A DNA stretch of 64,000 nucleotides from contig NIVC01003876.1 of NCBI GenBank assembly GCA_002269645.1, positions 8,652 through 72,651 on the forward strand. The letters are read 5' to 3'. A model generated the notes under the pieces. That model saw only the letters and a list, made by a program, of their open reading frames with translations. It did not search any database and was not told the DNA's origin. Shown here one piece after another: positions 35,914 through 61,005 of this stretch. The stretch is from Macrostomum lignano. Lineage: Eukaryota. Each line of letters begins with the position of its first letter. Positions within the stretch are counted from its first letter, which is position 1. The position numbers were made by a program, and so were the translations under genes.

Positions 35914-38900
35914 ATGCAGCAGCCATCACCTGCCGCTGCACCGCTCCGTCTCCATCGAGTTTGCGGTGCCGGCCTGTCAATCACGGATGACCGACTGTCA
36001 GCCAGACGCCGAGACAGCTGCGAATGCGAAGCCGTGGCCTTCTCAGCCGAACCGTTGCAACTCAACCAGTGGGCCAGCTTCGAACTGCAGCAGCAGCAGC
36101 AGAAGCAGCGTCGGGAAAAACGTCGGGAACTCGAGGACGCATCCGCAGGCGGACTTCGAGTCGGCGTTACGACGCTGAATCCGCAGTCGTTGCAGGGCCG
36201 TCTGCCGAGATACTCTTACCCGCCGGCAGACTGGCCGGACGAGGACGCCGTCTGGGTCCAGCCGGTGCCCGAAGGCGAGCTGCACAGCGGCGGGCGGCTC
36301 ACGCTGCACCTGAACACCTCCGGCCAGCTGCACTACTTTGTGGACGGGGAGCACCGCGGCTCGCTGCTGTCCTACCTGCCGATGCGCCAGGCCGCTCAGC
36401 GGCCCTTCTGGCTGCTGCTGGATGTCTATGGCAGCACCCGGCAGGTCACCAGCGTGCCGACCAGTGAGTGTTTTCAGTCTGCGAATGTTTTTGAGACTTG
36501 TTGTAGAATAACAGCAAATGCCCGGTCGTGCGGGTAACTTTCTCCGGAGATGAAATCTACAAGCTATTTTTGTTGCCCCTAGTAATTATACACGCTATTT
36601 ACAGTGAGCCATAATTGCCCAGCCTACAGAAGCTGTACCTTGCTATTTTTAATTCACTCTGTAGTGAATGTTCAGCGTCGCTTTCTTCTGTACGATATTT
36701 AGAATGGCTAAAGTTATTGTAAAAGAATTATCTAAATATATAGAAAGCTGAAGGCAAAAATAGAAGATAGATAGATAGATAGATAGATAGATAGATAGAT
36801 AGATAGATAGATAGATAGATAGATAGATAGATAGATAGATAGATAGATAGATAGATAGATAGATAGATAGATAGATAGATAGATAGATAGATAGATAGAT
36901 AGATAGATAGATAGATAGATAGATAGATAGATAGATAGATAGATAGATAGATAGATAGATAGATAGATAGATAGATAGATAGATAGATAGATAGATAGAT
37001 AGATAGATAGATAGATAGATAGATAGATAGATAGATAGATAGATAGATAGATAGATAGATAGATAGATAGATAGATAGATAGATAGATAGATAGATAGAT
37101 AGATAGATAGATAGATAGATAGATAGATAGATAGATAGATAGATAGATAGATAGATAGATAGATAGATAGATAGATAGATAGATAGATAGATAGATAGAT
37201 AGATAGATAGATAGATAGATAGATAGATAGATAGATAGATAGATAGATAGATAGATAGATAGATAGATAGATAGATAGATAGATAGATAGATAGATAGAT
37301 AGATAGATAGATAGATAGATAGATAGATAGATAGATAGATAGATAGATAGATAGATAGATAGATAGATAGATAGATAGATAGATAGATAGATAGATAGAT
37401 AGATAGATAGATAGATAGATAGATAGATAGATAGATAGATAGATAGATAGATAGATAGATAGATAGATAGATAGATAGATAGATAGATAGATAGATAGAT
37501 AGATAGATAGATAGATAGATAGATAGATAGATAGATAGATAGATAGATAGATAGATAGATAGATAGATAGATAGATAGATAGATAGATAGATAGATAGAT
37601 AGATAGATAGATAGATAGATAGATAGATAGATAGATAGATAGATAGATAGATAGATAGATAGATAGATAGATAGATAGATAGATAGATAGATAGATAGAT
37701 AGATAGATAGATAGATAGATAGATAGATAGATAGATAGATAGATAGATAGATAGATAGATAGATAGATAGATAGATAGATAGATAGATAGATAGATAGAT
37801 AGATAGATAGATAGATAGATAGATAGATAGATAGATAGATAGATAGATAGATAGATAGATAGATAGATAGATAGATAGATAGATAGATAGATAGATAGAT
37901 AGATAGATAGATAGATAGATAGATAGATAGATAGATAGATAGATAGATAGATAGATAGATAGATAGATAGATAGATAGATAGATAGATAGATAGATAGAT
38001 AGATAGATAGATAGATAGATAGATAGATAGATAGATAGATAGATAGATAGATAGATAGATAGATAGATAGATAGATAGATAGATAGATAGATAGATAGAT
38101 AGATAGATAGATAGATAGATAGATAGATAGATAGATAGATAGATAGATAGATAGATAGATAGATAGATAGATAGATAGATAGACAGAGAGATAGATGGAT
38201 AGATAGACATCTTCCTCTTGGTCAAGAATCTCTCGCCTCTCCCCTCCGCTCAGACGAGACCCCCATGGAGATCATCAGCCGCGGGCTGGGCGCACTGGAA
38301 GCCTACCACAGGGCCTGCGAGTCGGGCACCAAGCCGACCTACCGCACCCGACTGATGCTGTTGGGTCCACCGGGCGCTGGAAAATCCTCGCTGAAACGAG
38401 CGCTGCTGGGCGCCTTTGGAGGGTGAGTTTTATTGAGCTCAATTTGGTGCGTTTTGGCCTAAAGTGGTAGTCTGGGTGCTCGTGAAAGTCACAGGAGGAA
38501 GGGGGAGAGAGGGGAGGAAGGGGAGAGAGGGGAGGAAAGGAGAGAGAGGGAGGAAGGGAGAGAGAGGGGAGGAAGGGAGAGAGAGGGGAGGAAAGGAGAG
38601 AGAGGGAGGAAGGGAGAGAGAGGGGAGGAAGGGAGAGAGAGGGAGGGAGAGAGAGGGAGGGAGGGTGAGAGAGGGGAGGAAGGGAGAGAGAGGGGAGGAA
38701 GGGAGAGAGAGGGGAGGAAGGGGGAGAGAGGGGAGTCAAGCTAAATAAGGTCAATTGCAGATTGAGTATGCCATATAAATTGATATTTATTCTGTTAGAG
38801 ACTGACCAATGAAATTATTGAAAATTCGGTTTTGCAAAAAATTATGCAAAAATTGTACGACACAACAACAACAAACAACAAAATACGCTGTCATGATGGT

Positions 38901-61005: not shown

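Follow-up and report, generated by a model that had tools for sequence, protein, structure and literature searches.

An NHR-Roc-COR-Death-TIR protein of Macrostomum lignano, a candidate membrane-tethered Roco switch

DAPK1 is, to our knowledge, the only characterised animal protein with a core of Roc, COR and death domain (DD). It has a Roc-COR tandem and a C-terminal DD, preceded by an N-terminal calmodulin-regulated kinase and ankyrin repeats. A gene of the flatworm Macrostomum lignano encodes a protein with the same succession of Roc-COR and C-terminal DD, but without the kinase and ankyrin N-terminus; it has instead a Neuralized homology repeat (NHR), a Cys/His-rich module, a TIR domain and a CaaX box, all of which DAPK1 lacks. 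The gene is located at 35914-61005 on the + strand of a 64,000-nucleotide stretch of contig NIVC01003876.1 (assembly GCA_002269645.1, positions 8,652 to 72,651). This whole stretch is referred to as the window, and all coordinates are given in it. LRRK1, LRRK2 and Chlorobium tepidum Roco, which match the Roc-COR part best in structure, carry LRR, ANK, ARM or WD40 repeats and have a kinase output, and they have no DD, TIR or lipid anchor. MyD88 resembles the M. lignano protein in having a DD directly N-terminal to the TIR, but it is an adaptor of ~300 amino acids (aa) with an intermediate domain, and it lacks a GTPase, an NHR and a lipid anchor. The nearest solved TIR sequences and folds are those of SARM1/TIR-1 and of bacterial TIR NADases (AbTir, BtTir, Cat1, SPARTA TIR-APAZ). 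Unlike SARM1, the M. lignano protein has no ARM-SAM region and no Trp of the W-x-x-x-E motif, and it would be regulated by a GTPase instead of an ARM domain that senses nicotinamide mononucleotide (NMN)/NAD+.

More complete counterparts have been noted in silico. Van der Burg et al. 2016 reported a sea-anemone Pkinase-SH3-Roc-COR-Death-TIR gene ('NG3'), which has the same Roc-COR-Death-TIR core and an N-terminal kinase and SH3 domain, not an NHR, and they noted that Strigamia and Crassostrea have a 'neuralized' version (PMC5094078). Kron 2022 drew NHR-ROC-COR-Death-TIR proteins in Aplysia and listed one of them as MyD88-like with a ROCO domain (PMC9334734). An 'evolutionarily conserved TIR-domain-containing' class of invertebrate proteins was defined earlier (cited in PMC6321704). 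For bacteria, Kaur et al. 2021 described LRR-Roc-COR ('AP-GTPase') proteins fused to TIR and other effectors; the same authors treated NHR/SPRY-like domains as recognition modules and DAP kinase as the metazoan AP-GTPase (PMC8195603). In the bacterial proteins, Roc-COR stands between a recognition module and a variable effector, possibly a TIR, as in the M. lignano protein (PMC8195603). However, they are prokaryotic, have fast-evolving LRR sensors and lack DD, NHR and CaaX box, and the homology shown is confined to Roc-COR and TIR. NEURL4, a protein with NHR repeats, is bound in trans by the Roc domain of LRRK2 (PMC4565672), whereas in M. lignano the NHR is fused in cis. The architecture has therefore already been noted in silico, the family is uncharacterised, and its Roc-COR-DD core is not new, given DAPK1. 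An earlier annotation of the window, made from its letters only (the sequence-only reading), had known of no characterised protein with this architecture, and our literature search found none; it also found no paper naming 'Mlig033033'.

The gene model was rebuilt independently from stop-free stretches and splice-site consensus. It consists of 11 exons (35914-36463, 38254-38422, 42755-43023, 47333-48180, 49353-49496, 50334-50543, 50638-50808, 52914-53040, 58101-58258, 59462-59560 and 59629-61005), which together make 4,122 nt and encode 1,373 aa, in agreement with the clean splicing proposed by the sequence-only reading. All introns were GT...AG, the exon phases were consistent, and there were no internal stops. 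Between 35.9 and 61.0 kb, AT-poor coding sequence is interrupted by long simple-repeat introns, resulting in a gene span of 25 kb. The spliced product was 100% identical over its full length to NCBI PAA49455.1 ('hypothetical protein BOX15_Mlig033033g2, partial'), annotated on the same contig, in which 16 extra residues are translated upstream of the first ATG. The GenBank coding sequence (CDS) set of M. lignano was built from a genome-guided RNA-seq transcriptome (StringTie/TACO and de novo transcripts; PMC5730564), and thus the single-transcript reading has RNA support. Taken together with the colinear order in ~55 independently annotated orthologues, this makes separate transcripts very unlikely, and the earlier claim that NHR, Roc-COR and DD-TIR are parts of one polypeptide holds. 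The locus is a real, RNA-supported gene, with a domain and motif content far beyond chance.

Two exons were suspected to be spurious, exon 3 for its low complexity and exon 10 for its small size (33 aa). This was rejected, because both align to orthologues and are included in the GenBank CDS. An alternative exon at 53894-53950 was rejected for an in-frame stop and a wrong phase. A paralogue on another contig, PAA73250.1, is intact and 99.8% identical (3 of 1,389 residues differ), with one of the differences changing the CaaX box from CSIL to CSII. A third, partial copy exists. Two to three near-identical copies are expected from the recently duplicated M. lignano genome.

Pfam searches with the spliced protein recovered Neuralized (1.3e-22, aa 14-181), Roc (2.6e-9), COR-A (2.6e-16, aa 635-803), a weak COR-B, Death (2e-7, aa 1039-1113) and TIR_2 (9e-20, aa 1126-1236). 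Searches against PDB sequences concurred, pointing to the Neuralized NHR, the Roc of LRRK2/Roco proteins and the death domains of NRADD/p75NTR. Two AlphaFold2 (AF2) models were calculated, one for the C-terminal part and one for the N-terminal 1000 residues, each with a 40-sequence orthologue alignment, and both were compared with known structures by Foldseek. Together, these approaches confirmed the domain list of the sequence-only reading: NHR, Roc-COR, Cys/His segment, DD, TIR and prenylation motif. The N-terminal model had a predicted TM-score (pTM) of 0.73 and suggests that NHR, Roc, COR and Cys/His module form a compact unit. The protein has two features of Roco proteins, a Ras-like Roc with P-loop and DxxG and a COR directly C-terminal to it. 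Features of DAPK1 (kinase, ankyrin repeats) were not found in the Pfam scan, which gave no Pkinase or Ank match.

Exon 1 encodes the start codon, a 10-aa N-terminal extension and the NHR (aa 14-181, 35953-36456). The NHR matched that of Drosophila Neuralized among the PDB sequences (8.5e-13). In the AF2 model it was an NHR/SPRY-like beta-sandwich, superposing on Drosophila Neuralized NHR1 (4kg0) with a TM-score (TMt) of 0.88 and a root-mean-square deviation of 2.4 Å. The Pfam scan of the spliced protein gave no RING finger, a feature of the Neuralized E3 ligase. Exon 2 covers the NHR-Roc linker and the start of Roc with the P-loop G1 motif GPPGAGKS (38364-38387). Exon 3 contains switch I (KPDSCIDL, 42771-42794), aligning to the orthologue motif ESTDGIDL, and the beginning of a long, mostly disordered Roc insert, whose residues 273-328 had a per-residue model confidence (pLDDT) below 50. 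All family members have such an insert at this place, before G3; it varies among them, is disordered and holds two conserved helices. The rest of it, with these two helices, lies in exon 4, followed by G3 (DFNG, 47683-47694), G4 (THRN, 48010-48021) and the end of Roc. Among the PDB sequences, this domain matched LRRK2 Roc (5e-9). Motifs were counted in 46 orthologues: the G1 pattern GxxxxGK[ST] was kept in 44, the other two having a degenerate P-loop, and the G3 pattern DxxG was present in all.

COR-A and the start of COR-B, identified by Pfam and Foldseek, are encoded by exons 5-8 (49353-53040). COR-B continues through exons 9-10 (58101-59560), as indicated by the weak Pfam match, the orthologue alignment of both exons and a pLDDT of mostly 80-90, and it ends in the first part of exon 11 (59629-59709) with a final helix (aa 910-930 in the AF2 model) that carries the conserved motif VRxFLExxLxxLRxxWxKR. 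In Foldseek, the matches of the N-terminal model ranged from 7.7e-18 to 1e-13, with LRRK1 (7.7e-18), LRRK2 (2.4e-16) and C. tepidum Roco (5.8e-16) among them.

The Cys/His module follows directly (aa 943-986, 59710-59841) and has the pattern C-P-C-x3-C-x2-H-x4-C-x4-C-x-H...E-C...C-C-x-H. Its 7 Cys and 2 His were invariant in 15 orthologues and its pLDDT was 88-95. It is probably a zinc-binding mini-domain. Searches with its profile against PDB sequences and against Pfam, both up to an E value of 10, returned nothing credible. The module was also found in echinoderm Roc-COR paralogues with Macro, DED or ZU5-kinase modules, and for this reason it may be a zinc-binding extension of COR that has not been described before and belongs to one Roco subfamily.

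The DD (aa 1031-1115, 59974-60228) was supported by Pfam, by its profile and by a six-helix model with a pLDDT of 91-98. In the profile search of the PDB, NRADD (7e-11) and p75NTR (7e-10) matched best, with the matches to these two proteins ranging from 7e-11 to 1e-8. Ankyrin, MyD88, RIPK1 and PIDD were weaker, at 1e-4 to 1e-3 (MyD88 DD 1.3e-4). A linker of about 8 residues connects the DD to the TIR and leaves no counterpart of the MyD88-type intermediate domain.

The TIR (aa 1124-1264, 60253-60675) was modelled with a pLDDT of about 90. Among the 46 orthologues, its BB loop WMDxGQxGGGDxL (60340-60378) was essentially invariant. The Glu noted in the sequence-only reading at the catalytic position (aa 1196, 60469-60471) was kept in 45 of the 46, and it lies within helix alpha-C (residues 276-287 in the model of the exon-11 segment). 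AbTir, BtTir and Cat1 aligned cleanly, with the family Glu matching that of the W-x-x-x-E motif. In the profile search of PDB sequences, the closest TIRs were NAD+-cleaving ones from bacteria (7uxr, AbTir, Cat1 and PdTIR, 1.6e-7 to 2e-5), followed by SARM1 (4e-5), Hydra TRR-2 (5e-5) and TLRs (3e-3 or worse), and the MyD88 TIR was not found at E<1. With the C-terminal model, Foldseek ranked TIR-1/SARM1 first, then the SPARTA, TLR, MAL and MyD88 TIRs.

Behind the TIR, an Ala/Gly-rich low-complexity tail (60676-60981) had a pLDDT below 50 and a mean identity of 14% among orthologues; on the model, it would be a flexible tether between TIR and lipid anchor. The protein ends with CAVCSIL (60982-61002, with the stop codon up to 61005), a predicted geranylgeranylation site of the CxxCaaX type with Leu as X and a second Cys three residues upstream of the CaaX Cys. 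The CSIL box, proposed earlier as a prenylation motif, is part of a conserved ending, [KRQ]-C-x-[VI]-C-a-a-L. Of its positions, the upstream Cys was kept in 43, the CaaX Cys in 45 and the final Leu in 44 of the 46 orthologues.

A second, likewise uncharacterised invertebrate family shares the DD-TIR cassette at ~40% identity (Tubulanus XP_074660439.1, Haliotis asinina XP_067667248.1, Branchiostoma floridae C3Y622). Its members begin with a long helical N-terminus and end with a 'KSKSCxxL' CaaX box; between the two they carry a coiled coil, a Death domain and a pair of TIR_2 domains. DD-TIR modules with a lipid anchor thus recur behind different N-terminal regions.

With the raw or the low-complexity-masked protein as query, word-indexed searches did not reach beyond the M. 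lignano cluster and missed the family because of low complexity. An exhaustive HMMER search with aa 431-1286 gave 165 representatives below 1e-30, about 20 of which align across the whole Roc-to-TIR span at 30-45% identity. Domain mapping of the relatives revealed NHR, Roc, COR, Cys/His module, DD, TIR and the CxxCaaL end in the same order. By cluster look-ups and the orthologue profile, ~55 proteins with Pfam Neuralized, Roc, COR-A, Death and TIR_2 were collected from at least nine phyla, typically with one gene per species; identity within this set is 30-50%. The unannotated invertebrate homologues that had been thought possible therefore do exist. They are found in gastropods, bivalves, cephalopods and a chiton, in annelids (Owenia, Paralvinella), nemerteans (Tubulanus, Lineus) and the brachiopod Lingula, in Priapulus, in a centipede, a tick and a spider, and in sea stars, urchins, brittle stars, crinoids, hemichordates and amphioxus. 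Examples are Tubulanus XP_074643355.1, Asterias XP_033637020.1, Octopus XP_052830315.1, Branchiostoma XP_019640924.1, Aplysia LOC101861518 and a Saccoglossus entry named 'neuralized PATS1'. No vertebrate, insect or nematode was present among the named matches, which suggests that the family is absent from these groups. The 'ecTIR-DC' classification of Gerdol et al. 2017 probably includes the NHR-Roc-COR-Death-TIR family. UniRef's automatic name for several orthologues is 'non-specific serine/threonine protein kinase', yet they have no kinase domain; the name was probably transferred from LRRK/Roco kinases.

When compared with 10 phylogenetically spread members, the M. lignano protein was 28-40% identical over about 1,250 aligned positions, that is, over its full length. 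All family invariants were present in it: the Cys/His ligands, the TIR Glu, GQxGGGD, WPPPG, GGHGG and CxxCaaL. It differed from the orthologues in its longer low-complexity inserts (polyQ, polyA, Gly/Ser), in the 10-aa N-terminal extension and in the substituted switch-I Thr. Mean pairwise identity among orthologues was highest in the TIR (60%), followed by the DD and the Cys/His module (53% each) and by NHR, Roc and COR (about 44%; NHR 44% across phyla). With the poorly conserved tail, this profile fits conserved partners or catalysis combined with a flexible tether. By these comparisons, the architecture is an old, mostly single-copy bilaterian orthogroup and not a local novelty, with the M. 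lignano gene as its flatworm copy.

On balance, and with modest confidence, we favour the reading that the gene encodes a conserved, membrane-tethered, nucleotide-gated Roco switch protein with a DD-TIR output. Its basis is the observed gene structure, domains and folds, orthology and motif conservation, and from these we infer lipidation, GTP switching, an NHR ligand and the output chemistry. The conserved C-terminal motif suggests that a geranylgeranyl group would hold the protein at a membrane, probably with palmitate on the upstream Cys. By homology to other Roco proteins, Roc-COR would act as a nucleotide-dependent conformational and dimerisation switch, controlling whether the C-terminal death and TIR domains self-associate or contact partners. 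The NHR would feed this switch by binding a short linear motif, which could be part of an endogenous partner that is itself conserved or of the Roc insert of the same protein. The output would be an assembly of TIR and DD at the membrane. NAD+ cleavage of the SARM1/bacterial TIR_2 type is a real possibility, in view of the conserved Glu, and signalling through a DD/TIR scaffold is about equally possible. NADase activity requires a Glu at the catalytic position, but this residue alone does not suffice for it. Catalysis is favoured by the Glu, by the TIR_2 affinities and by the extreme conservation of the TIR, scaffolding by the absent Trp and the adjoining DD; the sequence and model evidence presented here does not decide between the two.

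Several observations weigh against the favoured reading. In the Roc, the switch-I Thr is present in 42 of the 46 orthologues, but M. lignano is an outlier with Asp and thus lacks a canonical G2. Its G3 reads DFNGH, not DFAGQ. Its G4, THRN, lacks the canonical Asp; among the orthologues this motif is TH[RK] followed by Asn (26 of 46) or Asp (13 of 46). Replacing the Asp at this guanine-specificity position by Asn alters the base specificity of Ras-like GTPases. Because of these three substitutions, GTP-dependent switching could be weakened or altered in M. lignano. In the TIR, the position four residues before the Glu is variable among the 46 orthologues (H in 16, L in 13, N in 5, among others) and is Ala in M. 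lignano, so that the usual Trp is absent. Gapless hhalign/phmmer alignments to SARM1 placed the family Glu opposite an Asp of SARM1, and E642 opposite a Pro. This placement was considered unreliable, since a SARM1 loop insertion at the site is the probable cause of the mismatch. The CSII ending of PAA73250.1 is a less typical prenylation box. Finally, the literature search found no experimental work on any NHR-Roc-COR-Death-TIR member, only the two in-silico mentions.

The Roc substitutions also bear on an alternative in which Roc would be a pseudo-GTPase in M. lignano and the protein a constitutive membrane scaffold, regulated solely via partners of the NHR or of DD/TIR. The change of Thr to Asp at switch I, the His in place of Gln after DxxG, the Asn in place of Asp at G4 and the degenerate P-loops of two orthologues would all fit it. 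Nevertheless, the P-loop GPPGAGKS and DxxG are intact, a Ser after the substituted switch-I position might stand in for the Thr, and the Roc core is still conserved, with 33-48% identity to orthologues, which leaves this alternative improbable. A further reading takes the protein for a MyD88-like adaptor of Toll/IL-1 receptors, whose TIR would dock onto receptor TIRs and whose DD would recruit IRAK/Pelle-type kinases, with Roc-COR having a modulating role only. The order of DD and TIR is that of MyD88, the MyD88 DD was matched by the DD profile and the MyD88 TIR structurally (TMt 0.71), and the Aplysia orthologue is listed among MyD88-like proteins (PMC9334734). However, specific kinship to MyD88 was not found: its TIR was missed at a threshold that bacterial and SARM1 TIRs passed with 1e-7 to 4e-5, the DD is far nearer to NRADD/p75NTR, and the short DD-TIR gap has no room for an intermediate domain. 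An ordinary MyD88 is also present in the same species, Aplysia. We consider such an adaptor unlikely.

The sequence-only reading had compared the protein with NLR/STAND receptors, and the layout of sensor, NTPase switch and DD/TIR effector that prompted the comparison is intact. In the full form of this idea, the protein would be a receptor for pathogens or danger and an executor of cell death, in which binding of a ligand from a pathogen or an injury by the NHR and oligomerisation of Roc-COR lead to NAD+ depletion by the TIR and kill the cell. The sequence-only reading put forward, as a hypothesis, that such binding drives Roc-COR to dimerise; in the Chlorobium Roco protein, the dimer corresponds to the GDP-bound or nucleotide-free state. 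Bacterial LRR-Roc-COR-TIR conflict systems and the use of NHR/SPRY-like folds as immune recognition modules are known (PMC8195603), the TIR Glu is conserved, and the nearest TIRs are those of NADases. On the other hand, the Trp of W-x-x-x-E is missing, and the NTPase is a Ras-like Roc: a search for a STAND NTPase (NACHT/NB-ARC) gave only chance-level P-loop matches (nSTAND1 E 0.07, nSTAND3 E 0.12). Conservation of the NHR equals that of the GTPase core, which sets it apart from diversifying sensor domains, and the family is not expanded, with its one gene per species. This argues for a fixed endogenous partner over pathogen ligands and weakens the part of the comparison that made the NHR a pathogen sensor. 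We rate a receptor of this kind as unlikely. An annotation artefact, namely a read-through fusion of neighbours, or a decaying pseudogene might be suspected from the 25-kb span, the repeat-packed introns, one of them with a retrotransposon, and the flag 'partial' of the GenBank entry. It is effectively refuted by the intact frame, the canonical splice sites, the RNA-based annotation, the intact paralogue and the colinear architecture of ~55 orthologues.

A more far-reaching version of the favoured switch reading is speculative and, taken as a whole, unlikely. It would make the family a second animal TIR enzyme that consumes NAD+ or produces a signal nucleotide, independent of SARM1, tethered by geranylgeranyl and palmitoyl groups, switched by a Roco instead of an ARM domain and conserved from amphioxus to flatworms. 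Its NHR would read a conserved endogenous peptide, its COR-B would bear a new zinc-binding module, and the Asn at G4 may shift the nucleotide preference of Roc. It would never have been studied because it was apparently lost in vertebrates, insects and nematodes.

If the proposed switch mechanism is true, Roco G-proteins (LRRK2, DAPK1) and DD/TIR signalling in immunity and cell death would be joined in one deeply conserved, single-copy polypeptide. This would offer a natural system for the control of a non-kinase effector by Roc-COR, and it would allow testing whether enzymatic TIR signalling in animals reaches beyond SARM1. If the protein is a scaffold only, it would still extend the catalogue of invertebrate TIR-domain proteins in a well-defined but ordinary way. 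M. lignano offers RNA interference and transgenesis (PMC5730564), and therefore the question is experimentally reachable.

Kilobase-scale arrays of short tandem repeats filled nearly every intron of the gene (36732-38225, 41996-42716, 43049-44224, 44576-45655, 45973-47109, 48190-49290, 50914-52755 and 54275-58066). Because of these arrays, both strands carry long spurious low-complexity open reading frames (ORFs), and GC/AT skews are locally strong. Intron 2 also contains an intact non-LTR retrotransposon ORF of 865 aa (38912-41509, - strand, Pfam RVT_1 4.1e-27), antisense to the gene.

Only one other annotated gene was found near the locus; it is on the - strand, has an 810-aa product and ends near 28576. 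Between it and the NHR-Roco gene, ORFs coding for coiled coils (30793-33905, - strand), with no gene in the public annotation, may be unannotated exons. Two long Gln/Ser-rich ORFs were located further upstream, one of 370 aa (18990-20099, + strand) with no Pfam match and one of 294 aa (16630-17511, - strand). Exons of a Cys-loop ligand-gated ion channel were detected at 5473-8230 (- strand; Pfam Neur_chan_LBD 3e-24, Neur_chan_memb 3e-21). At the other end of the window, three consecutive open stretches (62634-63092, 63096-63548 and 63552-63998, - strand) included a weak SET-domain match in the first (1.1e-4) and no Pfam match in the third. They may represent tandem copies or else exons of a gene with a SET domain, running off the window.

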